Source: Macrostomum lignano
Lineage: Eukaryota
NCBI GenBank assembly: GCA_002269645.1
Contig: NIVC01000364.1
Span: 558,001-622,000, forward strand
DNA length: 64,000 nucleotides
Direction: 5' to 3'
Shown here: one piece after another, positions 7-32,776 of the stretch
Layout of the letters: the number at the start of each line of letters is the position of its first letter
Numbering within the stretch: position 1 is the stretch's first letter
Made by a program: the position numbers and the translations under genes
The notes under the pieces: model-generated
Told to the model about the DNA's origin: nothing
The model's database searches: none
The model's input: only the letters and a program-made list of their open reading frames with translations

Positions 7-1876
7 ACCAATTGTAAAATTTATATCGCCGGACAGCCTGATGTCCGAGTACGCCGAGATGCTGGGCCTCCCGGACAAGCCCGTGCCAGAGGACGTCCTG
101 CTTGACAATCTGAAGACAGTCTACGACCTTAGCGTCACGTCCAACCATCCGCGCTTCTATAACCAGCTTTTCGGTCGCGTTCACGAAGAGTCCGTTGTTG
201 GATCTTTGCTAACTGACGCCATCAATGCGAGCATGTAAGCGGACTTGTTTACCTTCTTAAACTCTTTTTAGCTTATTATAACATTAACGGTAGCTAGTTT
301 AGGCTAGTCTAGACCCTGTGGGTCCACGAGTAGGTCAAAGGGACTTTCTCAAACGAAGCTTTTCGGTGATGTCATCCAACTTATTCCACATGCTGCTTTG
401 AATACCGAAGCAAGTAAAATAAATAGAAGCTAGACTATTAATCCCACGGGTGCCTGTAGATGTTAATCAAATCGTCCTGTTCACGTCCTATATATTTTCT
501 TAGTCTAACTAACTACTAAAAAAACTACTAAACACAACAGCTACACTTACGAAGTTGCTCCAGTGTTCACTGTGATGGAGCGTCTAGCAATGCAGCAATT
601 CTTGGAATTATTTGGCTTCCAAAATGGCGAAGGAGTCTGCACTCCGGGCGGTTCAATTGGTAACATGTACGCCATCAGTCTGGCTAAGTCGGCTGTATTC
701 CCCGACGCCAGACGGCTCGGTCTCGCTGCTATGCCGCCGGCGAAGATCTACGTGTCAATGGAGGTGTGTTCGCGCTCGAAGTTAGTTCTGTTTGAAAGGC
801 TCTGCGTATCTATCAAAGATGCAATTCAATAATAATACAATTTTCAGAGTCACTACTCGATGGTGAAAGGCGCCAGCTTCATGGGATTCGGAGAGAACGC
901 GGTCGTCAAGGTTGCAACCGATGAACACGGACGAATGAAAGTTGACGCGTTGAGGGAGCACATCAAATCGGACATTGAGAATGTAAGGTTTTTTGATTTT
1001 GAATTTCTGTTTAGTTTGACTGTCAACACTTTTACGGTGGTTTTCATTTTTTCGATATAGGGTCAGAAGCCTCTAATGGTGGTGGCCACCGCGGGCACAA
1101 CTGTGCTAGGCGTCTACGACCCAATATCCGAGGTGGCCAACGTGTGTCAAGAGTTTAACGTCTGGTTGCACGTCGATGGCTGCCTAGGCGGCAGTGCCAT
1201 CCTGTCGGAGAGCCGCCGGCACCTGTTGGATGGTTGCCAACGCGCTGACTCGCTGACTTGGAATCCGCACAAAATGCTTGGCGTCAATCTGCAGTGCAGC
1301 CTGCTGCTCACCAGACACTCTGGCGCTCTGCAAAGAGCTCACGGCACTCAAGCGGCTTACCTGTTTCAGCAGGACAAATTCTATCCACCGCAGTTTGACA
1401 TTGGCGACAAGGTGATCCAGTGCGGTCGCAAAGTTGACGTGCTGAAACTCTGGGCCGTGTGGCGCGGCCTTGGCAAGTCCGGCCTGGGCGATCTGGTTGA
1501 CCGAAAGTTCACCCTGGCTAAGCAGCTAGCCAATCTGATTGCGCAACGACAAAAGACCGACGGCTCGTTTGAGCTGATTGCCGAGCCGGAGAGTACCAAC
1601 GTGCTGTTCTGGTACATCCCGCCGGCTTTGCGCGGCCAGCCCGCCGACTGGAGCAAGCGGGACGACTCTTGGTGGCGCCAAATGGACGCTGTGGCGCCTC
1701 TCCTAAAAAAGCGAATGACCTTGGACGGCTCAATGCTGATTGGCTATCAGAAATGCGCCGCCTCTAAAAATATCAACTGCTGGAGAATGGTCTGCTCGCA
1801 GGACACCAACTCTGAGCAGGACATGGAGCGCATTGTCGGCGAGTTTTGCCGCTTCGGCGAAGACATTAGCGTCTGA
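7..1876 (+). CDS. Group II PLP-dependent decarboxylase (GAD/CSAD/GADL1/aspartate 1-decarboxylase family), 5'-partial; exons 7-234, 541-763, 848-982, 1061-1876
   Basis: Spliced product has HPRFYNQL, NASIYTYEVAPVF, PGGSIGNMYA, SHYS, ATAGTTVLG, WLHVDGCLGG and the PLP-lysine motif DSLTWNPHKMLG. All introns are GT-AG with matching phases (AT|C, phase 0, phase 0). The window opens on a TTTCAG acceptor, so earlier exons lie outside it. Confidence 0.93.
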
Positions 1877-3885
1877 GAAGTCTAGGAAGTCTAAGTTGAC
1901 CACCACAAACCACACTGTGTGACACTTCAAAATTTTCAGTTCGATAAAAAATTGTTTGAAACAAAAATTAACGTTTTTTATTTTTCTTCTCATTTTGGAG
2001 ACGCGCCGAATTGCCAGAAATAAAAAGTGCACAAGAAAACGGACTATTTCTCTACAAACTCTGATAAAAAATATCGGGCAAGATTGAGCATTTTGAGGAC
2101 TTCTATTAGATTACTTTTCTTCGGATTTTCTGCTAATGCGATTTGAATTTGTTTTAGAAGCTACTTACAATAGGATGCAGCGAATATTTTTATCGCAACT
2201 TGCAGCTTCTAGCATTGCAGATTTAGACAAGAGTTTATCGAATTTAATCAATTTTATTACTAGCTAGTATCATATTATCCATAACAGAATTTTGAAGCTC
2301 ATCTGATCGGTTAGCGATGGAGAGATTTCGTATCAATTCCTAATTAATTAAAATTGCTTTTTCAACCTCGTCCCCATGCAATCAACACCGTTTGTCACTG
2401 GCGTGGCCTGCCTAATCAATCTGGTGATATCATGACAACTATGGACCCGCAGTCAGCCTGAGCTATCCTGCTAATAAATAATAATGCAGAAGCTGACAGT
2501 TAATAAGCTCTTACCTCAATATTGACTGATGGATCTAGAAGTAACGTAAGCACAGGGCGGTGTATGCAAAAACTGGAATTGTTTGCAAAATGGATTAATC
2601 GAATCAATTCCCATCAAAAGCATCAATTAGCGATCCAACTGGCGCTGAGATGGACCGAGTTATTAAATGCGATCCCATATCCATCATATTTTCCTTTCAA
2701 AATAGAAACTGCAATACCTGCTCCCCATATAGTAATAAAAAAGCTTACAAGTTTTGTGGGGCCTTTTTGTCAATAAAGGGTATAGAGGGTATAGAGTGGA
2801 AGCCAGCGCCCCAGGAGAGCAAAGGCTACATTACCATACGCTGTGCATATGCCCAGCCAGATAGAAGATACTATATACTTATATAATTAACTTAATTTAA
2901 TTAGAAACTACATTAGCATGCTTGGTGCCAACTAAGGCTTGAGTTCTTGCCCTGTTTATGCACAATGCACAGCCATTGACCAGCTGGTGCAACTGCATAT
3001 ATATGCGCTTAAGAATCGTAAACTGTTCTCTCGCATGCAATATTCATTCATAAATTAATAATCATACATGCATAAGTACGACACCACCAGATGCTGGATC
3101 CCCAGGATTATAATTTAATAATAGAAATCCGGCGAGACTAAAAACCCATGAGTCAGTCAGGATCGGGAAAGGAGCATTTGCGGCAGCTTTTAAGGGAATT
3201 ACACTACAGGGAGCATGACTGCATGTAATGTCATACTTGAGCACAGTTCATACGTATACCTATTGTACAAGAAGAAAAGAGCAATCCACTAATCTGCTGC
3301 TAGCTGTCTTACTCAGGCAAGTCTATCTCTCTATCGAGGAACTGTTGACGGATTTTTGAGTAACAGCGTGGGAGTGGAAGCGAAGAATCTCAGGCCCCGT
3401 TGAAGGAAAGAAGAAGCGGGACGAGGTTGAAGGGCGGGACCTGGATGAATGTACATTGCACGCGGTTTGAGTAATGTACAGTAGGGAGGGGTTGGCTGAG
3501 GGTTAGACAGAAGGGGGATAGAGAGGGAAGGAGTTAAGGCCAAAAAAGACCTTGCCAAGGCCTCTAAAATATATACGACCCGTGTTAGCCCTCCGCCCCA
3601 AAAAGGAGCTGGGGGAGAACGCCGCGCACTCTGCAAATTATAAGCCAAGGCAGTAAAGTGGTAAAGTAGAGCATTGTGCGGCTGGCTGAGCAGAGGACCA
3701 CGGAAGGAGATTGAACTGAATCTATCATCAAAACTGACTTCATCCAAAGGAAAAGACGCGACTAGAAGCCACGGCTCCCTCCTCATCTATCCATCCAACT
3801 ATAGCCACCCCATAGCACTATCATAAATCGTATATAAGCTAGATTTGTTCGCTTAGATTCCGAACACTCGTATAATAAATTAATA

Positions 3886-6800
3886 ATGCGCAGCTTCTTG
3901 TCATCTCATGCGGAGATGCGGCTAAGGCGAACCTTGGGCGAATCAGGGCCGCAGCAGCAGCAATACCAGCCAATGTCCAGCGGTTTAATGGATCTGAGAT
4001 CTTTGCTGCAACAGCGAAGCAAACAGTCAACTGATGAGTCCGAGCAGAGCCTGCTATTAGAGGCCTACAGGCGCCGGGATGCTGACCAGTTGGAGAGGCT
4101 GCTGGTGTCCGGCGATCCGTACGCTCCGGTACTGTCCGGTCGGACTATTGCCGATCTGGCCGCGGCCGAGGATCAGATTTGGGTGCTGGACAGGCTGGAA
4201 AAGATCGGGTACGTTCTAAGATTGAGATTGAGAGTGAGATGGGTGAGAGTGAGATGGGGGAAAGTGAGATGGGTGAAAGTGAGATGGATGAAAGTGAGGT
4301 AGGTGAGAGTAAGATGGATGAGAGTGAGAAGGTTGAGGGTGAGGCATTTTGGCGGACGGCGTCCGGCGCGGATCTAATACGGCGCGGCGCGGCGTGTACG
4401 GCGCGCGGCGATTAGTACGGCGCGGCGCGGTACTAATTAGATGCCGAGGCATTTAGGCTTGATAAGACAGTCATAGTTACTCCTGCCGTTTACCCAAAAC
4501 TGCGTTAATTTTGCTTTAGGGTTTCTTTCACAGGTAAGTCATTTCACAGCGTGGCGCAGGTTGTGTAGGCGTCTGGCGTACTTAAGCCATGCGCTGCAAT
4601 AGGGTGAGATAGGTGAGAGTGCGAAGGCTCATAGTGAGTTGGGTCAGAGTAAAATGGAGTGAGATGGGTTGAGAGTGAGATGAGTCAGAGTGAGAAGGGT
4701 GAGAGTGAGAGAGGTGAGAGTGAGATGAGTGAGAGTGAGAAGGTGAGAGATAAGTGAGTGAGAGCGAGAAGGTGAGAGATAAGTGAGTGAGATGAGTGAG
4801 AGTGAGAAGGTGAGAGATAAGTGAGTGAGAGCGAGAAGGTGAGAGATAAGTGAGTGAGATGAGTGAGAGTGAGAAGGTGAGAGATAAATGAGTGAGAGTG
4901 AGAAGGTGAGAGATAAGTGAGTGAGATGAGTGAGAGTGAGAAGGTGAGAGATAAATGAGTGAGAGTGAGAAGGTGAGAGATAAGTGAGTGAGATGAGTGA
5001 GAGTGAGAAGGTGAGAGATAAATGAGTGAGAGTGAGAAGGTGAGAGATAAGTGAGTGAGATGAGTGAGAGTGAGAAGGTGAGAGATAAATGAGTGAGAGT
5101 GAGAAGGTGAGAGATAAGTGAGTGAGATGAGTGAGAGTGAGAAGGTGAGAGATAAGTGAGTGAGATGAGTGAGAGTGAGAAGGTGAGAGATAAGTGAGTG
5201 AGATGAGTGAGAGTGAGAAGGTGAGAGATAAATGAGTGAGAGTGAGAAGGTGAGAGATAAGTGATTGAGATGAGTGAGAGTGAGAAGGTGAGAGATAAAT
5301 GAGTGAGAGTGAGAAGGTGAGAGATAAGTGAGTGAAATGAGTGAGAGTGAGAAGGTGAGAGATAAATGAGTGAGAGTGAGAAGGTGAGAGATAAGTGAGT
5401 GAGATGAGTGAGAGTGAGAAGGTGAGAGATAAATGAGTGAGATGAGTGAGAGTGAGAAGGTGAGAGATAAATGAATGAGAGTGAGAAGGTGAGAGATAAG
5501 TGAGTGAGATGAGTGAGAGTGAGAAGGTGAGAGATAAATGAGTGAGAGTTAGAAGGTGAGAGATAAGTGAGTGAGATGAGTGAGAGTGAGAAGGTGAGAG
5601 ATAAGTGAGTGAAATGAATGAGAGTGAGAAGGTGAGAGATAAGTGAGTGAAATGAATGAGAGTGAGAAGGTGAGAGATTAGTGAGCGAGACGGGTCAGAG
5701 TGAGATGGGTGAGAATGTGATGGGTGAGAGTGAGAGAGCGAGTGCTACTTCGAGTTAAGAGCGGTTTACGGTAAATAAGTTTTCTTGTATCACTTTCAAA
5801 ACTGAGCACACTACTACGCACAGTGAAATCCACGTAAACAAAAACAAAACAGGTACGATTTCAACCGAGTCAATCAGCAGGGCATGACGCCACTTCATTA
5901 CGCAGTTGAGGAGGGCCGGCTGAACGTTCTGCTGAAGCTCAAAGCACTTGGCGCTGATCCAAATGTTCCTCTGCCATCGGGAGACTATCCACTGCACAGG
6001 GCTTGCGCTCAGGATAAGACCTCTGTGCTTGAGGCTCTGCTGAGTGAGGCCTGCTGAACTTTCTTTGCCTGTCTTGAAACCCTCCCTTCATCGTGAGCAC
6101 CACCCTCTGTCACTTCCAGCTCCCAGACTCCTCTTCATCGTGAGCACCACCCTCTGCCACTTCCAGCTCCCAGACTCCTCTTCATCGTGAGCACCACCCT
6201 CTGCCACTTCCAGCTCCCAGACTCGGAGACTCCTCTTCATCGTGAGCACCACCCACCCTCTTGGCACTTCTAGCTCCCAGACTCCTCTTCATCGTGAGCA
6301 CCACCCACCCTCTTGCCACTTCTAGCTCCCAGACTCCTCTTCATCGTGAGCACCACCCACCCTCTTGGCACTTCTAGCTCCCAGACTCCTCTTCATCGTG
6401 AGCACCACCCACCCTCTTGGCACTTCTAGCTCCCAGACTCCTCTTCATCGTGAGCACCACCCACCCTCTTGGCACTTCTAGCTCCCAGACTCCTCTTCAT
6501 CGTGAGCACCACCCACCCTCTTGGCACTTCTAGCTCCCAGACTCCTCTTCATCGTGAGCACCACCCACCCTCTTGGCACTTCTAGCTCCCAGACTCCTCT
6601 TCATCGTGAGCACCACCCACCCTCTTGGCACTTCTAGCTCCCAGACTCCTCTTCATCGTGAGCACCACCCTCTTGCCACCTCCAGCTCCCAGACTCCTCT
6701 TCTTCGTGAGCACCTCAGCCTCTATCTAACGATCCAGCTTTATGTTGAGCATCAAGTCTCAAGCCTCAGTTATAATTGCAATCCTCCCTTACTCTCAAAT

Positions 6801-9800
6801 TCTCCAGCCGACTGCCAGGCGGACCAGTCCGTCCGCGACCGTCAGGGCAACACGGCGTTGCACCGCGCCATCCTGGAGGAATCGTCGCCGCACATCCTCG
6901 CCCTGCTCCGCTGCAGCGACGAGGCGGCGCTGAACGCGCAGGGCCACGAAGGCCGGACACCGCTGCACCTGGCCGTGGCCAATCAGAACCGCCTGGCCAT
7001 GAAGCTGCTGCTGGAACGCGGCGCATTCGTCGACTTGCCAGCCGACAATGGCCGGACAGCCATCGACCTGGTGATGCAGCAGGGCAGCCCAGTTCTGCTC
7101 AGCGACCTGTCCACCTTCTACACGCGGGAAGTGTCTCGCACGGTCCACGCCAAGAGCTACAAGGAGCTGCTGTCTGAGCCGGACTTTCACCAGTTCCTCG
7201 GCTTCCTGCAGGCGGTGGACAATGAGTACAGAGTGTGCCGGGTGAAATCGCCCGAGCGGCTGAGCGAGTTCGAGCAGCGGGCCCTGCTTGAGCAGCTAGT
7301 TGCCGACCAGAAGGTCAGATTGGCTGCAGCTGGATTGGTTGGGGGGGGGGGTTCATGACATTTGACTGTCACTGTCTGACTGTCACTGTTTGACTGTCAC
7401 TGTTTGACTGCCACTGTTTGACTGTCACTGTTTGACTGCCACTGTTTGACTGTCACTGTTTGACTGCCACTGTTTGACTGTCACTGTTTGACTGCCACTG
7501 TTTGACTGTCACTGTTTGACTGTCACTGTTTGACTGTCACTGTTTGACTGCCACTGTTTGACTGTCACTGTTTGACTGCCACTGTTTGACTGTCACTGTT
7601 TGACTGCCACTATTTGACTGTCACTGACTGTCACTGACTGTCACTATTTGACTGCCACTGTTTGACCGTCACTGTTTGACTGCCACTGTTTGACTGTCAC
7701 TGTTTGACTGTCACTGTTTGACTGTCACTGTTTGACTGCCACTGTTTGACTGCTACTATTTGCCTGTCACTGTTTGAAAAATGGTAAATAATGGTATCTA
7801 AACCTTCAACAAGTTTTACTGTTTTGTGCATTCAAATTTGTATTACATTGGAAGCCGTCCCAGACTCCAGTGACATTAATTTGTATATCATTGCACACGG
7901 CAACTAACTGCACAGCAGGTGTTCGCACTTCAGCATACGCTCGTACAGCGACATACAAGTTGATAGCAGGTTGTATTGAGGCAGCGAGTGTTGTGACAGC
8001 AATTCTCAACTTATGCCATGTTTTAAACTATATACGCTACATGCTCGAGTGTATGCACTTAAGTGTGAGTACGTATTTAGGTACTTAGTGTTCCTGCAAC
8101 CTTCTAATTGAATATTGATCTTTTCTTATTGAAAACCCTCGATAATAGCTGGAATATGCGGCTTTTCACTCGGCTCAGACTCTATGATTTCAGTCTTATA
8201 AATTATAGGATCAGGGGTCAGTGTGATCTCTGGTATGCGTTTACAAGATTCTATCTTCTCTATCACCTCTCTCCTCTCTCCTCTCTCCACTTCTCTCCTC
8301 TCCTCTCTCCACTTCTCTCCTCTCCTTTCTCCTTTCTCCTCTCTTCTCTTCTCTCTCCTCTCCTCTCCTCTCGCCTCTCCTCTGTCTCCTCTCCCCTCTT
8401 CCCACTCTCCACTTGCCCCTCGCCTCAACACAAGTTCAAAAAGCTAGCAACCCCTGCTCGATCGAATCTCACAACTGCACTGACAATGAGTGAATAATCA
8501 TAATCAAGCGCATTCCCCCATCAACATCAAAATTGCTAGACTGGCTCTGGCTCATATTAAAGATGCGGATTCTCCCTGTCAGGTGGACCTGGTAGAGTTC
8601 CGCGATCTCGCCACCCGCCTGGCCCGGACCGAGCTGGCGCACGTTCTGGTGGACAACGAGGACGCACTGGAGAAGACCGCCGCCCTGGTGCTGCGCTACG
8701 TCCTGCTGCGCGAAGACATCGGCCTGCTGTGCCGTCTGTCAGCCTGCGGCATCCTCTGGACAGCCGTGGCCGAAGTGATCGAGTCCCGTCTGGACAGCGT
8801 CTACCTGCACACGCCCGAGCGCGGTGTCAGCCGCCTGGTGCAGAACCTCCGCCAGAGCTTCGTGCAGGCCGGCCGGCTTCGCCGAGACGCTCTGGCCAGT
8901 CACTATGGAGCCGAGTGCTCTGCGCACCTGCTGCCGGCCTACCGGCCTGACTACTGCCCCGATGTGTCCTACCTGCGCCATCCCATGGACACCTTGGCCG
9001 TGTGGTCTGTGCTCACCGGCAGGTTCCAGCTGACTGAGATGCTCATCCTGTGAGTCACTCTCTACATTCTATATCGGATGTTGTGGATTCAGTAAATGTC
9101 TATAGATTGCGTAATTGGGATTGAGTAGATGTCTATAGATTTCTAAATTGAGGTTGAGTGGATATCTATAGAATTCTAATTTCGAATTGAGTAGATATCT
9201 ATAGATTTCTAACTTGGGATTGAGTAGATATCTATAGATTTCTAAAGTGGGATGGAGTAGATAACTATAGATTTCTAAATTAGGATTGAGTAGTTATTTA
9301 TAGATTTCTACATGTGATTTCAGTTGAGTAGATCATAGATTAAGTAGGCCATAGAGTGGATCTATAGATCGAGTGCTGGATTGGAATAAAAATCGGTAAT
9401 GGACTGGGTCCTCTGAATCCCTCCCGGACAGGCAGGACCAGTTCGACATCATCCCCCTGTCGCTGTTCTGCGCTGGCCTGCTGCGCAGCCTGCTATCGAA
9501 TCCCGATTTGACGCTGGACGATGAGGAAATCGAATTGCTGGCCTCCCGCTGCGAGTCCATCGCCCAGGAGACCGTTGAACGGGTGTACACGCTGGATACG
9601 TCCTACTGCAAACAGGTGCGGTTTAGTAATATAAGTAATACAAGTAGCGTTTTTTATCCTTTTTTCATCATAGGCAACAGTATCTAATTAGATGAAAAGG
9701 TATTCAATTACCTAAACAAAGGGATAGTTACTCCCGCCTTTTACCCAGTTAGTTTACAGAGAGACAAGCCTCACCGAATTTTGCGTCTCCTCACCAGGTG

Positions 9801-12800
9801 ACCGTGGACTACCTGCTGATGCCGCAGCCGACGTACGGCGAAGCCTCCTGCATCGAGCTGGCCGCCAACAACAAGTCGGCCAGGTTTCTGCAGACAGCCG
9901 CCGGCCAGACGGCCCTGGATAAGAAATGGTACGGCTGCCTGTTGAACATCAGGCCGAGCCTGCGCGAGGCTGTCATCTGGCTGGGCATGGTGCCCGGCAA
10001 CCTGCTGGTGCCCATGCTGCTGGTGTACTTCGACGAGCAGCGCATGCTCGAGGAGCGGCGGCATCGTGGCGGCCCGCTGGACTCCGGCGGCGGCGGTGCC
10101 GGAGGCGCTGGCGGCGGGGGTCGCGGCGGTGACGAGACCTGCGAGTTCCTTGTCACCGCCAAGCGGGCCGAGTGCGAGGCGGCCGCCAACGCCAAGGCGG
10201 CAACTGCGGCGGCGAATGTGGAGGTGCAGTTCACGCCTTCTGGCAAGACTGCCACAACTGCTGTGGGGACCAAGGTTTGTTTACAGCTGCAGTTCATTTA
10301 AGAATGCAAGCACCCTCTCGTAGCCTAAGTCATGGCGCTCACGTAACCCGGAACCTGGTGTACCTTGCAATCTTACATTTTAATTAACTCGATTCCTAGG
10401 TATCTAGGCTTCACCACCTCTATTTTAGGTATGCAGGCTCCGTCATCTTCATCTCCAGGTACTCAGGCTCCGTCATCACCTTCATCCCCAGGTACCCAGG
10501 CTCCGTCACTACCATCTCCAGGTACCCAGGCGCCGTCACCATCCCCAGGTACCCAGGCTCCGTCACCATCCCCAGGTACCCAGGCTCCGTCACATTCATC
10601 CCTAAGTACCCAGGCTCCGTCACCACCATCTACAAGGTGCTCAGACTCCGTCATCACCATCCCCAGCCCCCAGGTACCCAGGCTCCGTCACTTTCATCCC
10701 CAGGTACCCAGGCTCCGTCATCACCATTCCCAGGTGCTCAATCTCCGTCATCATCATCTCCAGGTACCCAGGCTCCGTCACCTTCATCCCCAGCTCTCCA
10801 GTATCGGCCAGCTCTATCCCCAGATACCCAGGCTCCGTCACCTTCATCCCCAAATACCCAGGCTCCGTCACCTTCATCTTCAGATACCCAGGCTCCGTCA
10901 CCTTAATCCCCAGATACCCAGGCTCCGTCACGTTCATCTTCAGATACCCAGGCTCCGTCACCTTAATCCCCAGGTACCCAGGCTCCGTCACCTTAATCCC
11001 CAGGTACCCAGGCTCCGTCACCTTAATCCCCAGGTACCCAGGCTCCGTCACCTTAATCCCCAGGTACCCAGGCTCCGTCACCTTAATCCCCAGGTACCCA
11101 GGCTCCGTCACCTTAATCCCCAGGTACCCAGGCTCCGTCACCTTAATCCCCAGGTACCCAGGCTCCGTCACCTTCATCCCCAGGAAGCCATCATCAAGCT
11201 GGCCAGCCCATTAAAAGCGCCCAACTCTATTTACCAGGCCCTGACAGACCCTGACGACCAGCCGGAGGAGCGGCGCAGTCTGCTCGGCGGGTCCAAAGTC
11301 AGCCTGACCTCCTCGGAGCGGCAGTTGCGCAATCCTCACCTCCGCCGCCTGCGCCAGTTCTTCCGCCTGCTGTACGGCTTCTACAACATACCGGCGGTGA
11401 AGTTCCGGTATCACGCCCTGGCCCACGCCAGCCTGCTAATGCTCCTGTCGTACGTTCTGGTCATCGATTTCGAATACAGCCTCAACACGGCCGAGGCTGC
11501 GGCTTATTGCATCATCTGCGGCTACCTCATTGAAGAGGTTGGCGAGCTGATGCAGTGCGCCATGTACACCAGGCTGAGCGACTACTTTCGGAGCAAGTGG
11601 AACTACATTGACATTGCCGCACTGTTCACCGCGGTCATTGGATTCTTCTTGCGCATGGGCAAAGTTGCCGGACACATGGACACTGTGGAGCAGAGGCTCA
11701 CCATGTCGTTTAATGATCCCGGATGGTACTTGGCCAGGCTGTTTCTGGGTAAGTGAGGAGCCTGAGGGGCTGCGGCCCGGGTCCTTCAGTGTCTCTCCCT
11801 GGTCCTTCAGTGTCTCCCCCTGGTCCTTCAGTGTCTCCCCCTGGTCCTTCAGTGTCCCCCCTGGTCCTTCAGTGTCTCCTCCCCTGGTCCTTCAGTGTCT
11901 TCCCTTCCTATCCTTCAGTGTTTGGGGATTTGGAAATTTTGAAAATGGATTTTTAATTTGGGGATTTCCAATTGCAAATGGGTGCCTGGATCCTAACTTT
12001 CACAACGCCTAGTATTCAATTAAGCAAATTTGATTGCTCTGTGAAATTTGGGACCCTTGTGAAGCTCAGGTTTAGTTTGGGGTTTATGAAGTTTAGGGTC
12101 TATGAAGTTTAGGTTTTTTGATGTTTAAGGTTTATGAAGTTTAGTGTTTATGAAGTTTAGGGTTTATGAAGTTTAGGGTTTATGAAGTTTAGGTTTTATG
12201 AAGTTTAGGTTTTACGAAGTTTAGGGTTTATGAAGTTTAGGGTTTATGAAGTTTAGGGTCCATGAAGTTTACGTTTCACAAAGTTTAGGGTTTATTAAGT
12301 TTAGGGTTTGTGATGAAGGTGAATGCTAGTATTTTAGGCGTTGTGAAAGGGTTTACAAATGGTTTGTGAAAGAGCACCCTATTGTGGTGTTTTCGAGATG
12401 TGGAGTTCAAGATTTTCATGCACACACATTATACTACTATACACCGCCTGCAATCAGTAGCGTATGAAGCCCATCCGGCTGTAAACTGCCAGCCTCTTAG
12501 CCTCATCAGCAACATCATCATCCCGCAGGCATATCCTGTTCCCTATACTGGATCAGGCTGTTGTACATCTCAACTGTGCTGGAGACTCTCGGGCCCAAGC
12601 TGAAGATGATGGCCAAAATGATCACCCAGGACCTGTTCCCATTCCTGTTCATCCTATTCATATTCATATTCGCCTTTGGCGTGCTCATGTACGGCCTGCT
12701 GTTTCCCAACGGTTATTACGCTTGGAACCCGGAACAGATGACTGTGCCGAACATCCTGCTGGGCATGTTCCGGATCTGCTTCTACAGCATGGTTGGCGAC

Positions 12801-14109
12801 TACAGCTTGGATGCCGTGATGGGAGCTGACGGGTGCAATGAAATCCTTGATAACAAAGTCTTCAACAATACCCAGTCCTGCCCGCACCATGTTGGCAGGT
12901 AATGTTGTTGGACATTGACAATCTGCCATTTTTGCTAGCTACAATTTGCCATTCCCTGTTAGCTACAATCTGCCATTCCTGTTAGCTACAATCTGCCATT
13001 CCTGTTAGCTACAATCTGCCATTCCTGTTATCTACAATCTGCCATTTCTGCTAGTTACAATCTGCCATTCCTGTTAGCTACAATCTGCCATTTCTGTTGG
13101 CTACAATCTGTCATTTCTGCTAGTTACAATCTGCCATTCCTGTTAGCTACAATCTGCCATTCCTGTTAGCTACAATCTGCCATTCTTGTTAGCTACAATC
13201 TGCCATTTCTGCTAGTTACAATCTGCCATTCCTGTTAGCTACAATCTGCCATTCCTGTTAGCTACAATCTGCCATTCCTGTTAGCTACAATCTGCCATTC
13301 CTGTTAGCTACAATCTGCCATTCCTGTTAGCTACAATCTGCCATTTCTGTTAGCTACAATCTGCCATTCCTGTTTGCTACAATCTGCCATTCCTGTTCCT
13401 ATTAGCACAATCTGCCATTTTTGTTAGCTACAATCTACCATTCTTGTTAGCTACAATCTGCCATTCCTGTTGGATACAATCTGCCATTCCTGTTCCTATT
13501 AGCACAATCTGCCATTTTTGTTAGCTACAATCTACCATTCCTGTTAGCTACAATCTACCATTTCTGTTAGCTACAATCTGCCGTTTTGTTAGCTACAATC
13601 TGCCATTCCTGTTGGCTACAATCTGCCATTCCTGTTGGCTACAATCTGCCCCTTCCCAGATACCTGGTGCCCTACGTGATCCTGCCGCTGTACGTGATCA
13701 TCACGGAGATCCTGCTGCTGAACCTCATCATCGCCCTGTTCAGCCGCACAGTCGAAGAGATCGATTCGCGCAGCCAGTCCCTGTGGCAGTTCGAGCGGCA
13801 CGACCTCATCCAGGAGTTCCAGTCGCGCTCCTCGCTGCCGCCGCCGTTCAACGCGCTGGACCTCCTTCGCCGCCTGGTCCTATTCGTTGTCGGCCGACTC
13901 CGGCCCGACCTCCGGCCGAGCGCCGACGACGACTTCGACCAGCAGCTGGTGCTGCAGTTCCTTCTGTTCCAGGCCTTCAGCCTGCGCAACAACCGGGCCA
14001 GATCGCTGGCCGAGCAGGACAGCGAAGACGACCGGCTGATGTCCCGGGTGGCCGAGGTTGTCCGCAACGAGCTGCGCAAGTACCACCAGCACAAGGACCA
14101 GCAGCAGCG

Positions 14110-14149
<40 letters not shown>

Positions 14150-14269
14150 GAGTTGCTAGATGAGAAGCAGCGGCAGCAGCCGCCAGAGCGGCCAAGCGGC
14201 GGCGGCAGCGTCGCCGGCACGCCGGGCAGCGCCGATTTCTCGCACGCTGGCACCGACGATACTCGCTAA
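3886..14269 (+). CDS. TRPM-family cation channel with N-terminal ankyrin repeats (~1230 aa); exons 3886-4208, 5853-6043, 6808-7313, 8583-9049, 9432-9615, 9798-10274, 11184-11748, 12529-12898, 13660-14269
   Basis: Ankyrin motifs GMTPLHYA, GDYPLHRA, GNTALHRA, GRTPLHLA. TRPM-type MHR3/4 segments PMDTLAVWSVL and SCIELAANNKSARFLQTAAGQTALDKKWYG. S4-S5 WIRLLYISTVLETLGPKLKMMAKM, S6 ILLLNLIIALFS, TRP box WQFER followed by LPPPFN. Eight GT-AG introns with consistent phases; exon sum 3693 nt, divisible by 3. Confidence 0.9.
4600..5740. repeat. GA-rich minisatellite (29/38-bp units) in TRPM intron 1
   Basis: GAGTGAGAAGGTGAGAGATAAGTGAGTGAGATGAGTGA reiterated; a related stretch lies at 4218-4340. Confidence 0.95.
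6077..6715. repeat. ~52-bp minisatellite in TRPM intron 2
   Basis: CTTCATCGTGAGCACCACCCACCCTCTTGGCACTTCTAGCTCCCAGACTCCT. Confidence 0.95.
7361..7776. repeat. 14-bp minisatellite in TRPM intron 3
   Basis: TTTGACTGYCACTG. Confidence 0.95.
8266..8420. repeat. CT-rich low-complexity tract in TRPM intron 3
   Basis: (CTCTC/CTCCT)n. Confidence 0.85.
9095..9330. repeat. Degenerate ~36-bp tandem repeat in TRPM intron 4
   Basis: GATTGAGTAGATATCTATAGATTTCTAA variants. Confidence 0.75.
10425..11183. repeat. 30-bp minisatellite in TRPM intron 6, ending at the acceptor
   Basis: CAGGTACCCAGGCTCCGTCACCTTAATCCC; strict 30-nt period from 10671 to 11181. Confidence 0.95.
11780..11915. repeat. ~21-bp minisatellite in TRPM intron 7
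   Basis: CCCCTGGTCCTTCAGTGTCT. Confidence 0.9.
12070..12310. repeat. 16-bp minisatellite containing TTTAGGG, TRPM intron 7
   Basis: GTTTAGGGTTTATGAA. Confidence 0.9.
12915..13650. repeat. 23-bp minisatellite in TRPM intron 8
   Basis: CTACAATCTGCCATTCCTGTTAG. Confidence 0.95.
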
Positions 14270-16484: not shown

Positions 16485-17722
16485 AGTGTTCCTTTGTTCT
16501 CCTGTTCCCTTGTTCCACTATTCCCCTGTTACCCTGCTCCCCTGTTCCCCTGCTCCCCTGTTCCCCTGCTCCCCTGTTCCCCTGCTCCCCTGTTCCCCTG
16601 TTCCCCTGTTCCCCTGCTCCCCTGTTCCCCTGTTCCCCTGCTCCCCCTGTTCCCCTGTTCCCCTGTTCCCCTGCTCCCCTACATGTTCCCCTACATGTTC
16701 CCCTGTTCTCTTGTTTCCCTGTTTCCCTGTTCCCCTGTTCCCCTGTTCCCCCTGTTTCCCTGTTCCCCTGTTTCACTATTCTCCTGTTCCCCCTGCTCCC
16801 CTGTTCCCTGTTCCCCTGTTCCCCTGTTCCCCTGTTTCAGTATTCTCCTGTTCCCCCTGTTCCCCCTGTTCCCCTGTTCCCCTGTTTCCCTGTTCCCTTG
16901 TTCCACTATTCCCCTGTTCCCCTGTTCCCCTGTTTCACTAATCTCCTGTTCCCCTGTTTCCCTGTTCCCCTGTTCCCCCTGTTTCCCTGTTCCCCTGTTC
17001 CCCCTGTTCCCCTGTTCCCCCTGTTTCCCTGTTCCCCTGTTCCCCCTGTTCCCCTGTTCCCCTGTTCCCCTGTTCGCCTGTTTCACTATTCTCCTGTTCC
17101 CCCTGTTCCTCTGTTCCCCTGTTCCCCCTATTCCCCTGTTCCTCTGTTTCCCTGTTCCCTTGTTCCACTATTCCCCTGTTCCCCTGTTCCCCTGTTCCCC
17201 TGCTCCCCTACATGTTCCCCTGTTCTCTTGTTTCCCTGTTTCCCTGTTCCCCTGTTCCCCTGTTCCCCTGTTCCCCTGTTCCCCTGTTCCCCTGTTCCCC
17301 TGTTTCACTATTCTCCTGTTCCCCCTGTTCCCCTGTTCCCCTGTTCCCCTGTTTCACTATTCTCCTGTTCCCCCTGTTCCCCTGTTCCCCCTGTTCCCCT
17401 GTTTCCCTGTTCCCCTGTTCCACTATTCTCCTGTTCCCCCTGTTCCCCTGTTCCCCTCTTCCTCCTGTTCCCCTGTTCCCCTGTTCCCCTGTTCCCTTAT
17501 TCCCCTGTTCCCCCTGTTTCCCTGTTCCCCTGTTCCACTATTTCCCTGTTCCCCCTGTTTCCCTGTTTCCTTAGCCTGTTTCCCTGTTCCCATGTACCTC
17601 CTGTTTCCTGTTCCCCTGTTCCACTATTTGCCTGTTCCCCCTGTTTCCCTGTTGCCCTGTTCCACTATTCCACTATTTGCCTGTTCCCCCTGTTTCCCTG
17701 TTCCACTATTTCCCTGTTCCCC
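16485..17722. repeat. Pyrimidine-rich satellite with 8-bp core, overlapping the protease stop codon
   Basis: (TTCCCCTG)n with CACTATT variants. Confidence 0.95.
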
Positions 17723-19992
17723 CAGAGCAGATCATGTTCATCTGGCAACGGCTTTTCTTATTGCGCGGAATGCACAGAGTGCCGGGCATCAACAGCAGCC
17801 TGGCCGAGTGGCTGCCGTTGCTGCATCGCACAGGCCGGCAGAGGTAGCGGGTCGTTTTCGGCGGCGACAGAATCTTGGCGTGGGCGGTTGGCCCCGCGAA
17901 CGCCAGCTGGCGCATGTGGCGGCACTGGTCCTCGGCTGAGCCAGCAGGACCCTCCGGCACCCAGAGCTGACTGGCTGGGTTGCTAAGCTTGCGCAGACAT
18001 CCGGCTCTCGAGCTGGATAAGAACTTTTTAATTTGACTCCGCGAAGCTGCCGAATATGTGAATAGGCGCGACAGGCGAGACAGGTGGGCGGGACGTGACT
18101 GATCGCTCTCCATCAGGTAGTTCGCCTCCCTGCTGCTGTTTGGCGGCGAGTCTGTGGCTCCTGGAAGATAGCAAGCGGAATTTTGTGGAAAATCCCCGAG
18201 CTTCCTTGCATCTCTGTCTCTCTTGACTCTCCTGACACTTTCTGTATCAGCATCTCTGTCACTCCTGCTGACTCTCCTGACACTTTCTGTATCAGCATCT
18301 CTGACTCTCATGACTCTCCTGACACTTTCTGTATCAGCATCTCTGTCACTCCTGCTGACTCTCCTGACACTTTCTGTATCAGCATCTCTGTCACTCCTGC
18401 TGACTCTCCTGACACTTTCTGTATCAGCATCTCTGTCTCTCCTGCTGACTCTCCTGACACTTTTTGTATCAGCATCTCTGTCTCTCCTGCTGACTCTCCT
18501 GACACTTTCTGTATCAGCATCTCTGTCTCTCCTGCTGACTCTCATGACACTTTCTGTATCAGCATCTCTGTCTCTCCTGACACTTTCTTTATCAGCATCT
18601 CTGTCTCTCCTGACACTTTTTGTATCAGCATCTCTGTCTCTCCTGCTGACTCTCCTGACACTTTCTGTATCAGCATCTCTGTCTCTCCTGCTGACTCTCA
18701 TGACACTTTCTGTATCAGCATCTCTGTCTCTCCTGACACTTTCTGTATCAGCATCTCTGTCTCTCCTGACACTTTCTTTATCAGCATCTCTGTCTCTCCT
18801 GACACTTTCTTTATCAGCATCTCTGTCTCTCCTGACACTTTCTGTATCAGCATCTGTCACTCCTGCTGTCTCTCCTGACACTTTCTGTATCAGCATCTCT
18901 GTCACTCTTGCTGACTCTCCTGACACTTTCTGCATTACAACATCGTGAAGTTTGTGGATTTTTTGCAAGGCACTCACCAAGCACGTGACCAAGCTCGTGA
19001 GCAATGAGCCTGGCAGTGGCGGCCGGATACAGGTCGGTGATCACTGACCGAGAGTTCGGCTGGCAGGCTGAAGCCACATAGGACAGGCCGATCAGGCGGG
19101 CCCCCTTGGGCTTCGGGCCCAAGCTGGCCGGCGGCAGAAGGCTCCGGTCCCGGGTGATCAGCATGTGGTGATCGTAGCCGCCCCTATCGTCCTTTTGCCA
19201 GTCGGCCAGAGCCTCCATGCTGAGCAGCAGCTGCAGGGCTGGGACTCGCTGTCCGAACTGTCTCAAATAGGCAATTCCAGGCGCCTTCAGGCTGGCGTAG
19301 GCCCTCGAGCGGCCCAGCACCCAGCGGATATGGATGCCGACAGCTGCCAAAGCCCGGTTGACTATGCCAAATACGGCACCGAAGTAGCTGGTGGCGGCCG
19401 CTTGTGCACCGTCTGGCGATGAAGAGAAATGACGCCACACCGACGGGTCCAGATCCAGGCGAAGCTCCAGCACGGCTGCTCCGCCGCTGCCTGAAGCGTC
19501 ACTCCCTCCTGACGATGTCAAGGTGACTTCTTTGGCAGACTTGCTGCTTGAATTCAGCTTGCAGGCGAAGCCACGCCCGGCAGCTCCGTGAATAGCCAGC
19601 GAGATGACGCTGTGACGGCTACCGTTCGAGTTCATTCGAACCAGACCTGCCAGTAGGTCGGGACCGCCGAATTTCGGGTGCGCAACAGTTGCCGTAGCTT
19701 GAATTGAACTACTGGACTTCAGTTTGTACCGGTCGGTTCTCACCTTGCCGCTCTTCCCTACCGTGGATACTGAGGACGAATGGCGTTTCAGCAACAGGCG
19801 CTTCGGCATCAGGCGGCCGGCTGTCGAGTTTTGCTTCTTTAGCAGAGGCGGAGCCAAATTAAGCTGAAGCTGGTTGCCAGATGCTTTCCAGATGACGCGC
19901 CACGCATGATCAGAGTTGGCGCAGTCGGTTGACGCTGCGCTAGCGGCTCCGATGCATACTAGTAGGATCAATAACCACTGCAGATGATGCAT
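17706..19992 (-). CDS. Secreted M12B (reprolysin/ADAMTS-like) metalloprotease, 489 aa: signal peptide, pro-region, catalytic domain, Cys-rich domain; exons 19992-18978 and 18160-17706
   Basis: Hydrophobic N-terminus MHHLQWLLILLVCIGAASA; DHHMLIT and LIGLSYVASAC strands. HELGHVL-G|GTGAGT donor and TATCTTCCAG|GA acceptor (both phase 1) give HELGHVLGATD. Met-turn NYLM, terminal helix SRSQIKKFL..GCL, then EDQC...C...C...GTLC...C...C. Confidence 0.85.
18208..18932. repeat. 45/33-bp minisatellite in the protease intron
   Basis: CTCTCCTGACACTTTCTGTATCAGCATCTCTGTCACTCCTGCTGA. Confidence 0.95.
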
Positions 19993-20522
19993 GCCGACTG
20001 ATACTTATAAATAATCTTCTGCTGAGTAGTAGCTTAAATCTATATCCTCTTGATTTCACGTTTTGAAAGACGTTTCACTACAACCGCGATATACGCTCGT
20101 ATACTGCTATTGTAGTTTCCTTTTAGACAACTGGCGAATGCTGCAATCGTTCAATAAAATCAACCGTCTATACACCCTCAGAGCTTATACATGTCAATGT
20201 ACGACTGTACGTCTGTTAATCCTCGAGTTGAGTAGCTCGCATATATTAAGTATTGATCTTGTGAGCGCAACCAGCAATGAGCCAGCAGAAGTCTCTAGAC
20301 AGCTGAAAAAGGTCTTTACAGTTTGCATTGTGCAGTGGGACGAATGAAAGTCTCAAACCCAACCAAGAGATTGCGTAGTGGCTCTCATATCATAACAGGG
20401 TCACCTGACGTGTTCACCTGACACTGCAGTTAAAAATACGCTCAAAAACCGCCATTTATACATGTAGCACAGAAATTTCTGTGTAACTTCTGTGATTTAT
20501 AGCTACTTGGATCAAGTTTATA

Positions 20523-24609: not shown

Positions 24610-26076
24610 TTATAGTCCTTTTATGTAGTATCCACCATTAGAGGTCAGACGGGATCCCGATCCCGAAATCTCGGGATCCCAAGGAAAATTGAATTCTCGC
24701 GGGACCAGAATCCCGACCATAAAAAACTCGAGATTCGGGAATAGGTCTTTCAATTAATAATTTATAGAATTAGTGATTACTTGAAGGTATTTTGCTTTAA
24801 CTTGTACTCGTTACATTATTTACTTTGTTGGTTACAAAACTTCATATCAATTTCATTGTGTTTTACTTCTTGATCTTGACAATCTTTTCTCAATTTTGTT
24901 TAACTTTACATGGACAATACACTAAAAGACCTGATCCCGATTCCCAAATCCCGATCCCAATCCCGAGAAAAAAATTATTCCCAATCCCAATCCCGCCCAA
25001 AGATTTCAATCCCGTTTGACCTCTATCCACCATGCTCTATGTACTTCTAATGCCTCCGTAGCCACAAATCAAAGGTGCCGCAATATTCTAATTCAGTGAA
25101 TACCCTCAACTCTGAATTGATAGCGTATGCCAGGTCTTGCTATCTTTGAAATTTGCACCTAGCCAGCCTCTCAATCAGTTTTGAGAAGGCCCAGAAGTTG
25201 CACGGAGCCAAGTCAAGGCTATAGGGTGGGTGGCAAACAGTTTTTAGCCAGTTTTCCTCTAGACAAGCTGAAGTCATCGCCACAATATGGCTTGACACAT
25301 TGTCATGGTGAAGGTAGATGCAACCTGACTCTAAGCATATGCATTGATTTTTCCACATGAAATCAATGACAGCTGGCAGGGCAGTGCTGGTGTAGAAACT
25401 GGCATTCACATTCTAGCCTTTGGGCACCATGACAACAGCTACTAGGCCACAGATGCTGAAGAACACAATGAACATCTGCTTGCACGAGCAAAATCTTAAT
25501 TGCAGAACTGTTTGATGCTCTTTATCAGCACTAATCCAAACCTTATTCTGGCTCTTGTTGGGCACCTGGAAGTAGTAAAACCATTTCTTGTCACCAATGA
25601 CAATGTCAGAGAGGCACTTAGTGCTGCTAGAACCAAAGCAATGCAAGAACTCTTGACTACAACAAACCCGCTCTTAGAGCTGCTTCTCAGTGAGCTGATG
25701 GGGCACCCAATGAGCTGTGATCTTCCTGAGCCCTAGCTGCTCATGCAGGATGGTAAAAATGCTGCCCTCAGATATGTCAAGTGTCTGGCTCAGCATGGCA
25801 ACAGAAATGTTTGGGTCACTCTTCAACCACCAGCGATTGCATAGTGCCAATGTTGCTCTTGGTCATGGCTGTGCTCGGCCTCCCAGATCGAGGGTCATCA
25901 CAGAGGCTGCTCCTGCCAGTGCCAAAAGCCTCAATCCATTATGCAATGGTGCAATAAGATGGAGCCTGATCCCCTATCACCTATGCTAAGTCGGCATGGA
26001 TTTTGGTGGCATTTTCTCCAAGTTGTGCACACATAAAAATGTAGAAGCGCATGTTTTCTGAGCTGTTATTTTCCAT
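24610..26076 (-). pseudogene. Mariner DD34D transposase pseudogene
   Basis: MENN..RFYIF..LGENATKIH, DDPRSGRPST, WVP(H)QL, IVIGDKKW, HHDNV, HPPYSLDLAPCNFW, C-terminal IEHGG/YYIKGL*. Multiple stops and frameshifts. Confidence 0.9.
24639..25025. mobile_element. hAT-type non-autonomous element (MITE), 387 bp
   Basis: TIRs TAGAGGTCAGACGGGA and TCCCGTTTGACCTCTA; exact 8-bp TSD TCCACCAT (24631-24638, 25026-25033); subterminal CCCGAT repeats. Confidence 0.88.
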
Positions 26077-30137: not shown

Positions 30138-32776
30138 GAATATAAAGTAGTCGTGTTGGGCAGCGGCGGGGTTGGCAAGAGCGCCCTGACTGTTAAGTTT
30201 GTGTCCGGCAATTTTGTTGAGAAATATGATCCAACTATTGAGGACTTCTACAAGAAGCAGATCACGTGAGTTGACAATAAATTAATTGTGACGCAGTTCC
30301 ACTGTTAATAAAGCTGAGTTATTTAGGGTCGCATGGAAGGGGCTTGAGGTTTCTACCACTGTGCTATGCTATCCATTGAGCCAGCAAATCACGCAAGACT
30401 GATGTTATCACAGCTGGCATCAAGCTACATGTAGGTTTTGAACTTTTAGAGTCTTATTGTTAATTAGTCTTAAAGCTTATTAATGCCACAGCATTTCAGA
30501 AATTCAGGCCTTGACATCTCAACAATTCCCCCATTATGAGCCTTGACATCTCAGCAATTCCCCCCATTATGAGCCTTGACATCTCAGCAATTCCCCCATT
30601 ATGAGCCTTGACATCTCAGCAATTCCCCCCTATTATGAGCCTTGACATCTCAGCAATTCTCCCATTATGAGCCTTGACATCTCAGCAATTCCCCCAATAT
30701 GAGCCTTGACATCTCAGCAATTCCCCCCATTATGAGCCTTGACATCTCAGCAATTCCCCCAATATGAGCCTTGACATCTCAGCAATTCCCCCAATATGAG
30801 CCTTGACATCTCAGCAATTCCCCCATTATGAGCCTTGACATCTCAGCAATTCCCCCATTATGAGCCTTGACATCTCAGCAATTCCCCCATTATGAGCCTT
30901 GACATCTCAGCAATTCCCCCCATTATGAGCCTTGACATCTCAGCAATTCCCCCCATTATGAGCCTTGACATCTCAGCAATTCCCCCCATTATGAGCCTTG
31001 ACATCTCAGCAATTCCCCCATATGAGCCTTGACATCTCAACAATTCCCCCATTATGAGCCTTGACATCTCAGCAATTCCCCCATTATGAGCCTTGACATC
31101 TCAGCAATTCCCCCCTATTATGAGCCTTGACATCTCAGCAATTCCCCCTATTATGAGCCTTGACATCTCAGCAATTCCCCATTATGAGCCTTGACATCTC
31201 AGCAATTCCCCCATTATGAGCCTTGACATCTCAGCAATTCCCCCATTATGAGCCTTGACATCTCAGCAATTCCCCCATTATGAGCCTTGACATCTCAGCA
31301 ATTCCCCCATTATGAGCCTTGACATCTCAGCAATTCCCCCCTATTATGAGCCTTGACATCTCAGCAATTCTCCCATTATGAGCCTTGACATCTCAGCAAT
31401 TCCCCCAATATGAGCCTTGACGTCTCAGCAATTCCCCATATTATGAGCCTTGACATCTCAGCAATTCCCCCCTATTATGAGCCTTGACATCTCAGCAATT
31501 CTCCCATTATGAGCCTTGACATCTCAGCAATTCCCCCAATATGAGCCTTGACATCTCAGCAATTCCCCCATTATGAGCCTTGACATCTCAGCAATTCCCC
31601 CAATATGAGCCTTGACATCTCAGCAATTCCCCCCTATTATGAGCCTTGACATCTCAGCAATTCCCCCATTATGAGCCTTGACATCTCAACAATTCCCCCC
31701 TATTATGAGCCTTGACATCTCAGCAATTCCCCCTATTATGAGCCTTGACATCTCAGCAATTCCCCATTATGAGCCTTGACATCTCAGCAATTCCCCCATT
31801 ATGAGCCTTGACATCTCAGCAATTCCCCCATTATGAGCCTTGACATCTCAGCAATTCCCCCAATATGAGCCTTGACGTCTCAGCAATTCCCCATATTATG
31901 AGCCTTGACATCTCAGCAATTCCCCCAATATGAGCCTTGACATCTCAGCAATTCCCCCATTATGAGCCTTGACATCTCAGCAATTCCCCCCATTATGAGC
32001 CTTGACATCTCAGCAATTCCCCCATTATGAGCCTTGACATCTCAGCAATTCCCCCATTATGAGCCTTGACATCTCAGCAATTCCCCCATTATGAGCCTTG
32101 ACATCTCAGCAATTCCCCCCATTATGAGCCTTGACATCTCAGCAATTCCCCCCATTATGAGCCTTGACATCTCAGCAATTTCCCCATTTTGAGCCTTGAC
32201 ATCTCAGCAATTGCCCCCATTATGAGCCTTGACATCTCAGCAATTCCCCCATTTTGAGCCTTGAGTTTTGAGCCTCACTGTATAGTTGCGCAAGACAGCC
32301 GGCCACCCAGCCACCCAAATGCTGATAATAAGGCAATTTATACCTGCCTCACTCTCCCCAGTGTTGACCAGCAGCCGGCAGTGCTGGAGATTCTGGACAC
32401 GGCTGGCACGGAGCAGTTCGCCTCAATGCGCGATTTATACATAAAAAATGGCCAAGGCTTTGTTGTAGTCTTCAGCGTAACATCCATGCAGACGTTTCAA
32501 GATATACAGCAGTTGCGCGATCAGATTAACCGAGTCAAAGGCCAATCCAACAGTCCCATTGTGCTGGTTGGCAACAAGGCCGACCTGGCCGATTATCGTC
32601 AGGTAGCGCCGGACATGGGCGAGAGTCTCAGCCGAGCCTGGTCGTGTCCTTACCTGGAGGCCTCGGCCAAGACTGGCTACAACATTGAGGAGGTATTCCG
32701 CGTGGCCGTCGGCGAGATGAGCGCCGTAGCCAAGGCCAGGTCTGGTGGATCCGGATGCTGCTGCGCCATTCTCTGA
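30138..32776 (+). CDS. Rap2: Rap2 small GTPase, start codon not in the visible exon; exons 30138-30265 and 32362-32776
   Basis: [51 protein letters not shown] (Rap2-type), GNKAD, EASAK, C-terminal CCCAIL CaaX. The AC|GTGAGT donor and CCCCAG|T acceptor are in phase 2. Confidence 0.93.
30507..32270. repeat. ~32-bp minisatellite in the Rap2 intron
   Basis: CCTTGACATCTCAGCAATTCCCCCATTATGAG with a variable C-run. Confidence 0.97.

Follow-up and report, generated by a model that had tools for sequence, protein, structure and literature searches.

An ankyrin-bearing TRPM-like channel gene, probably of the flatworm TRPM_MCLZ type, in Macrostomum lignano

Can a channel with a TRPM-type core begin with an array of ankyrin repeats, and, if so, what kind of channel would this be? 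The question is raised by a locus at 3886–14269 on the forward strand of a 64,000-nucleotide stretch of the Macrostomum lignano genome (contig NIVC01000364.1, positions 558,001 to 622,000; hereafter the window). A preliminary description, made from the letters alone, had read the locus as one phase-consistent gene joining six to seven ankyrin repeats to a TRPM core in place of MHR1/2, and had proposed a domain-swapped TRPM subfamily. The evidence assembled below favors, with a probability of roughly 85%, a single gene for a TRPM-like cation channel of the flatworm type represented by TRPM_MCLZ, and one of at least 10 paralogous loci of this kind in M. lignano.

Nine exons make up a frame of 3693 nucleotides that runs from an ATG at 3886 to a TAA at 14267–14269 and specifies a product of 1230 amino acids, with all eight introns bounded by GT-AG and consistent in phase. 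An in-frame stop (3835–3837) precedes the first ATG, the donor of exon 1 lies at 4209, and the frame of exon 3, if read beyond its donor, meets a stop at 7356–7358, i.e., 45 nucleotides into intron 3 (7314–8582). From exon 3 onwards, as far as the C-terminus, the model is matched colinearly by an independent M. lignano protein (P0121), at 47% identity in an alignment exceeding 1000 residues (E = 0); identity reaches 53% where P0121 residues 1–168 align with 6810–7316. Another paralog, P0122, matches all nine exons at the same boundaries: for example, its residues 101–172 correspond to 3991–4206 in exon 1 and its residues 170–243 to 5842–6042 at exon 2 (45% identity). A UniRef entry from M. lignano (P0123, 448 residues) is 100% identical to exon 7 and to the part of exon 9 that it covers, and differs by one residue in exon 8. 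Judged by these alignments, the gene model is far beyond chance, and the exons, intron 3 and the stop at 7358 are as the preliminary description gave them.

The product can be described as a succession of seven ankyrin repeats, a family-specific helical linker, an MHR3/4-like region, a disordered variable linker, a TRPM-fold membrane domain (pre-S1 helix, S1–S4 voltage-sensor-like domain, S5, pore helix, S6 and TRP helix) and C-terminal helices. The repeats were read by hand as seven including two caps (residues 51–276), in keeping with the earlier count, and exons 1–3 are matched by the Pfam families Ank_2 (E 2.4e-24) and Ank (2.5e-22). At the other end, Ion_trans is found on exons 7–9 (E 2.3e-14), followed by the TRP box WQFERHD at residue 1070 and LPPPFN at residue 1087. 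The intervening part had been called MHR3/4-like, and this stands for MHR4 and distal MHR3: residues 463–632 align with the canonical TRPM MHR3/4 region in hhalign (probability 98.9%, E 1.4e-17), and the TRPM2-like domain PF25508 is matched on exons 4–6 over profile positions 90–255 (E 7e-6), with 26.8 bits against a cut-off of 27 bits. Homology to canonical MHR3 begins at about residue 421 by Pfam and at residue 463 by hhalign. The 120–185 or so residues that directly follow the ankyrins (from residue 277 to about 420) are helical, and sequence and profile comparison detected in them no homology to canonical MHR3. Only MHR4 and distal MHR3 are, at the level of sequence, demonstrably homologous to canonical TRPMs. 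The exon 4 region is all-helical in the AlphaFold2 model, with a predicted local distance difference test (pLDDT) score mostly of 73–91 and a dip near 59; as the post-ankyrin region as a whole is likewise all-helical in the model, it lacks the Rossmann-like SLOG fold.

The reported absence of SLOG-type MHR1/2, NUDT9-H and kinase modules is equally borne out. Pfam returned no LSDAT/SLOG, NUDIX or kinase match in the 1230-residue product, while the same library recovered LSDAT_euk from canonical TRPMs, two of them from M. lignano, with E values between 1e-26 and 1e-81. When the N-termini (first 600 residues) and C-termini of canonical TRPMs were run by tblastn against the whole 64 kb, nothing but the S6–TRP region was matched. 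Upstream, the same strand carries a pyridoxal-phosphate-dependent decarboxylase gene that ends at 1873; about 2 kb of AT-rich spacer is left before the channel gene, and there is thus no room for missing MHR1/2 exons on that side.

The channel core is of the TRPM type. With the transmembrane core as query, the best 60 distinct sequences in the PDB are all TRPM1–8 (6.5e-31 to 3e-19), and TRPN cores align with it at E 1e-9 to 1e-11 only. An AlphaFold2 model of residues 269–1174, built on an alignment of 50 sequences, has a mean pLDDT of 80 and a predicted template modeling score of 0.79, and contains the pre-S1 helix, S1–S6, the pore helix, the TRP helix and a long C-terminal helix (residues 1139–1172, exon 9). 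Foldseek searches with this model placed TRPM structures in all of the top 50 positions, each at probability 1.0 over ~870–1000 aligned columns. No TRPC, TRPA, TRPN or TRPV is found among these 60 PDB and 50 fold matches, so that both the six transmembrane segments with a TRPM-type TRP box and the TRPM assignment of the core hold as first proposed. At the level of residues, WQFERHDLIQEF…LPPPFN of the window protein aligns with WKFQRYELIKEY…LPPPF of zebrafish TRPM2, and E834, E837, N856 and D859 align with the E-x-x-Q…N-x-x-D of the same channel, the S2/S3 motif that coordinates Ca2+ in TRPM2/4/5/8. Exon 7 includes the motif EEVGE…WNYID, along with H793 and H797 of S1 and Y830 and E834 of S2.

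The design itself turns out to have been recognized in parasitic flatworms, in publications of 2023–2026. Park et al. described Sm.TRPM_MCLZ (Smp_333650) as the channel that meclonazepam activates: its long N-terminus carries "ankyrin-like" repeats, the drug evokes currents through it in HEK293 cells, and it had earlier been assigned to a TRPM7-like class (PMC10788528). According to a 2024 review, TRPM_MCLZ lacks MHR1/2-SLOG, has ankyrin-repeat modules instead and a short C-terminus devoid of an enzyme domain, and is found in excitable cells (PMC11731825). The label "TRPM-like" was proposed in a 2026 paper for a group that clusters "next to" TRPMs; this study also notes the ankyrin repeats at the N-terminus, counts 63 TRPM_MCLZ orthologs among trematodes, monogeneans and cestodes, and describes exon 3 of the Opisthorchis gene as duplicated (PMC12861061). 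Thus, the novelty of the subfamily, which the preliminary description had left for checking, does not hold (PMC10788528, PMC11731825, PMC12861061).

Several features connect the window gene to this type. In the Dicrocoelium protein P0133, the Sm landmarks H827, H831, Y864, E868, R943, H946, Y1038 and Y1117 are met by H, H, Y, E, R, Y, Y and Y, the offset from Sm numbering being constant at +18 up to and including S4 and at +14 beyond the pore loop. The same columns of the window protein hold H793, H797, Y830, E834, R914, Y917, Y990 and F1081; five of the six meclonazepam-contact residues (Sm H827, H831, Y864, E868, R943 and Y1117) are therefore kept, as mapped through the P0133 offsets and not by alignment with the Sm protein. 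The Opisthorchis relative carries two channel blocks, which matches the duplicated exon 3 of Opisthorchis TRPM_MCLZ (PMC12861061), and parasite relatives entered under the name "TRPM7" fit the former TRPM7-like class (PMC10788528). Taken together, the link of the window gene type to TRPM_MCLZ appears strong but indirect.

How is this gene placed among its relatives? An exhaustive HMMER scan collected 1586 of them, with the ankyrin-bearing matches ranking above all labeled SLOG-bearing TRPMs; a search with the whole protein had been uninformative on the channel, being dominated by generic ankyrin proteins. In neighbor-joining trees of the channel core (141 sequences, 294 columns, 100 bootstraps, and a second run with TRPN outgroups), all ankyrin-bearing relatives form one clade, with a bootstrap of 72, or 67 with the TRPN outgroup. 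Within it, the neodermatan sequences make up one branch (bootstrap 100), while a second branch, with 11 sequences (98–100), is confined to Macrostomum and has the window gene beside P0121, P0125 and P0122 (94). By source name, the members comprise the trematodes Opisthorchis, Dicrocoelium and Fasciolopsis, the cestode Schistocephalus (the entry "TRPM7"), the monogenean Protopolystoma and, from M. lignano, Mlig030565, 019746, 023207, 012389, 022043, 033956/026745, 004154, 011337 and 000356, the type being present there at the paralogous loci counted above. P0137 from Schistosoma rodhaini was considered as the schistosome TRPM_MCLZ and rejected: its channel block at 627–896 cannot accommodate Sm H946 and Y1038, and the trees place it among SLOG-type TRPMs. 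The notion of a domain-swapped subfamily can be retained as regards a conserved subfamily forming one clade, though not as regards the direction of the swap: the node between the ankyrin clade and the other TRPMs has a bootstrap of 10–20 and, also with the TRPN root, does not separate a nested from a sister position.

This bears directly on the best-surviving alternative, in which no swap took place: the ankyrin-bearing clade would be an old and separate TRP lineage, sister to TRPM or to TRPM plus TRPS, that kept its ancestral ankyrins and survived in flatworms alone, radiating to at least 10 receptor channels in free-living forms, with the single TRPM_MCLZ of the parasites as a remnant. With the TRPN outgroup, the clade indeed falls outside all 108 other TRPM matches; the undetectable MHR3 homology of the first 120–185 post-ankyrin residues would also fit, as would the "next to" placement and the possible name "TRPM-like" in the literature (PMC12861061). 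However, the separating node is poorly supported, and an attraction of long branches towards the outgroup is an obvious other explanation; MHR4, distal MHR3, the TRP box and LPPPFN belong to the usual features of TRPMs; and an ancient origin would need loss everywhere else, given that every member with a named source is a platyhelminth. We therefore regard such a lineage as unlikely. Were it nonetheless real, the window gene would belong to an unrecognized TRP family, in a group deserving family rank, and would bear on the timing of ankyrin loss on the TRPM stem.

Quite improbable is the idea that this copy is decaying or not expressed, an incipient pseudogene in which five extra introns filled with minisatellites block correct splicing. 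It draws on the largely minisatellite content of all introns but one, on the lack of the five introns in the closest paralogs, on the earlier annotation having recovered only a fragment and on the many redundant M. lignano paralogs. Against this, the 3693-nucleotide frame is intact across nine exons with canonical splice sites throughout, every functional motif tested is kept, and the paralogs differ from the window gene chiefly in the linkers, the core being conserved. The Gly/Ala-rich linker that begins in exon 6 shows no conservation, and its pLDDT stays under 50.

The preliminary description had itself envisaged a different origin of the fusion, namely, that two genes were mis-joined, one for an ankyrin protein that terminates at the 7358 stop, the other for a channel with its own start; such a TRPM channel would be short at its N-terminus. 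The read-through of exon 3 into that stop and the channel-only prediction P0123 could be taken in this sense. Yet the full architecture recurs in relatives where splicing has no part in it. The loci of P0126 (L005:1001-4405) and P0124 (L006:1001-4363) are single intronless open reading frames whose exact translations are these proteins (1134 and 1120 residues), both with Ank and TRPM2-like Pfam matches and the channel core, and P0124 with an Ion_trans match. At the P0122 locus (L001:5318-7618), a single frame of 766 codons spans ankyrin repeats 5–7, the linker, the MHR-like region and S1–S3, and at the P0125 locus (L003:3931-6198), one exon likewise runs from repeats 5–7 through S3, so that the junction lies inside one exon in both. 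A Logan contig (L002, DRR639838) holds a 1072-codon frame with Ank and Ion_trans, and the Schistocephalus "TRPM7" (P0287), which we take to be transcriptome-derived from our own reading of its source, has the same ankyrin plus TRPM-core architecture. Moreover, all paralogs conserve the 64-residue post-ankyrin linker of exon 3 along with the channel part, and in them it shares one exon with ankyrins and channel; exon 4 lacks an in-frame start context conserved in relatives. With the join inside single frames or exons of the paralogs and the linker conserved along with the channel, a mis-join is very unlikely, and the ankyrin–channel join of the locus, as read from these relatives, is no splicing artefact; an extra, short ankyrin-only isoform could exist beside the full-length product. 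Finally, that the protein is a TRPA, TRPN, TRPC or TRPV misread as a TRPM, as the top whole-protein matches to NOMPC and ankyrins might suggest, is refuted, since those matches cover only the ankyrin repeats (residues 63–297) and the core has the exclusively TRPM matches and distant TRPN alignments given above.

There remain points that weigh against a TRPM_MCLZ-type gene at this locus as set out above. The gene model is drawn from genomic DNA and homology, and the sole public protein from the locus, P0123, covers only the channel and runs on into the minisatellite of intron 6. The ends of that intron fall in the non-conserved linker and are not fixed by homology; the exon 7 acceptor at 11184 is accordingly uncertain, 11238 being likewise in phase. 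The trees are neighbor-joining only, with moderate support for the clade as a whole (67–72) and poor support for its attachment to TRPM. The link to TRPM_MCLZ is drawn from the spacing of landmark residues, from source names and from the duplicated Opisthorchis exon, with published Sm residue positions standing in for the Smp_333650 sequence; the TRP-helix contact tyrosine (Sm Y1117) is replaced by phenylalanine (F1081), and the filter reads VGDY in the window protein as against F-EV in the parasite orthologs. All functional statements, moreover, are made by analogy.

The introns of the gene form a subject in their own right. Introns 1, 3, 4, 5 and 6 (4209–5852, 7314–8582, 9050–9431, 9616–9797 and 10275–11183) have no counterpart in the closest paralogs, P0122 and P0125, which have only introns 2, 7 and 8 in common with the window gene; P0126 and P0124 contain no introns at all, and P0127 a single one of 103 nucleotides. 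These differences imply five gains in the lineage of the window gene or repeated losses in the others. Intron 5 has CAG|GTG at both of its junctions. Seven of the eight introns consist mostly of a minisatellite array of their own, all different, with units of 14–67 bp in 7–31 copies matching at 79–92%; the 30-bp array of intron 6 has no stop in any forward frame and is translated in P0123. At the P0122 locus, a second partial channel match (L001 572–1497, model residues 902–1172) lies upstream on the same strand, which suggests tandem paralogs or a partial duplicate.

What might such a channel do? The only gating known from experiment for the TRPM_MCLZ type is by a ligand in the S1–S4 pocket, and the mechanical, thermal or protein-partner input put forward in the preliminary description is speculative. 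By analogy, the window protein would probably assemble as a tetramer, with the long C-terminal helix as a pole or coiled coil, and would probably conduct cations non-selectively, Ca2+ included, because the pore-helix tyrosine is conserved and the filter holds an acidic residue (VGD), comparable to the GE filters of TRPM3 and TRPM7. Gating would probably proceed through the S1–S4 cavity, since the E…E/N…D motif of the S2/S3 Ca2+ site of TRPM2/4/5/8 is kept together with five of the six meclonazepam-contact residues. With neither a SLOG nor a NUDT9-H module present, gating of the ADP-ribose type can be excluded. The ankyrin array would most likely serve as a platform for assembly or partner binding; a NOMPC-like spring is unlikely, as seven repeats are far below the 29 of NOMPC. 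The response to meclonazepam is predicted to be poor, because the equivalent of Sm H946 is a tyrosine (Y917), the low-sensitivity state. A tyrosine at this S4 variant position has been linked to the low meclonazepam sensitivity of S. japonicum (PMC10788528).

These observations matter in more than one respect. TRPM_MCLZ is a validated anthelmintic target, and the same architecture is here seen in a free-living and genetically tractable flatworm that could serve as a laboratory model for the physiology of this channel type, with RNA interference, transgenesis and expression atlases at hand. Its presence in both a macrostomid and neodermatans implies that the architecture predates the split between them. 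More generally, the ankyrin-bearing channels are a well-documented exception to the rule that TRPMs have no ankyrin repeats.

The rest of the window, collected with the exons in Table 1, is of a varied nature. The upstream decarboxylase resembles glutamate or cysteine-sulfinate decarboxylases. Just downstream of the channel gene, at 16487–17722, stand ~151 copies of the 8-bp unit TGTTCCCC with a strong strand asymmetry. The reverse-strand frame with the HELGH motif runs into a 45-bp minisatellite (18208–18932) that is likewise open. The transposase-like frames, which gave no Pfam match at E 0.001, lie in an AT-rich stretch at 22–30 kb (GC 0.30–0.39). The small GTPase looks Rap-like.

Table 1. 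Exons of the channel gene and other features of the 64-kb window
Feature	Position	Strand	Content or evidence
Exon 1	3886..4208	+	Start codon, low-complexity N-terminus, ankyrin cap repeat and repeat 2
Exon 2	5853..6043	+	Ankyrin repeats 3-4; AG/GT sites in phase; Pfam Ank
Exon 3	6808..7313	+	Ankyrin repeats 5-7 (to 7121), then 64-residue family-specific helical linker (7122-7313)
Exon 4	8583..9049	+	Helical region, putatively MHR3-like; colinear with paralogs
Exon 5	9432..9615	+	MHR3/4-like region; hhalign and Pfam PF25508
Exon 6	9798..10274	+	MHR4-like region (to ~10046), then start of Gly/Ala-rich variable linker
Exon 7	11184..11748	+	Rest of variable linker, pre-S1, S1, S2, S3, start of S4
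Exon 8	12529..12898	+	S4 (R914, Y917), S4-S5 linker, S5, pore helix (Y990), filter VGDY, start of S6
Exon 9	13660..14269	+	S6, TRP helix (WQFERHD, F1081), LPPPFN, C-terminal helices, polyQ tail, TAA stop
Minisatellite arrays	4718-5735, 6082-6714, 7361-7777, 9085-9310, 10427-11184, 11776-11921, 12074-12313, 12918-13650		
Pyridoxal-dependent decarboxylase gene	509-1873	+	Pfam Pyridoxal_deC E 2.6e-54; at least 2 exons, stop ~1873
385-codon open frame	18850-20004	-	HELGH zinc-metalloprotease motif; weak Reprolysin_3 match, E 3.5e-4
Candidate decayed Tc1/mariner-type transposase	25143-25673	-	Two adjacent open frames (…HPPYSLDLAPCNFW…)
Ras-family small GTPase exon, C-terminal two thirds	32258-32773	+	Pfam Ras E 2.5e-35; CAAX-like CAIL end

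The window protein can be set beside several known systems. TRPS (soromelastatin, ced-11-like), the sister family of TRPM and a divergent TRPM relative in invertebrates, was compared by description only; it retains the SLOG and Nudix domains and lacks ankyrin repeats (PMC7306681). With TRPN/NOMPC and TRPA1, the window protein shares a canonical N-terminal ankyrin array ahead of a six-transmembrane TRP core. NOMPC has 29 repeats and TRPA1 ~16, in contrast to the seven seen here, and the window protein differs further in its TRPM-type core and in the MHR4 module between ankyrins and membrane. The canonical TRPMs (TRPM2, TRPM3, TRPM4, TRPM5 and TRPM8; PDB 6co7, 6d73, 9mtc and 9n1h) provide its best sequence and fold matches and share MHR4, pre-S1, S1–S6, the TRP box, LPPPF, the C-terminal helices and the acidic/Asn/Asp motif of S2/S3; they are set apart from it by its lack of SLOG/MHR1/2, NUDT9-H and kinase, its true N-terminal ankyrin repeats and its unrecognizable proximal MHR3.

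The closest parallel is with Sm.TRPM_MCLZ and its orthologs, which have in common with the window protein the N-terminal ankyrin repeats in place of MHR1/2-SLOG, the TRPM-type MHR4, six-transmembrane core and TRP helix, the short, enzyme-free C-terminus, the S1 His/His, S2 Tyr/Glu, S4 Arg and pore-helix Tyr, and the same clade in the trees. The ankyrin–TRPM design is thus already known from parasitic flatworms, and the locus does not represent a new channel class. The literature search found no paper tying TRPM_MCLZ-type channels to Macrostomum or planarians; the occurrence of the type in a macrostomid, its expansion there, the full-length model of this locus (for which public sets hold only the 448-residue fragment) and its five introns missing in the closest paralogs appear to be undescribed. 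The differences, too, are considerable: the window gene comes from a free-living macrostomid with at least 10 paralogous loci, in contrast to the single gene described in the parasites, it has nine exons as against "typically 3" in the latter, and the proteins are 20–25% identical.

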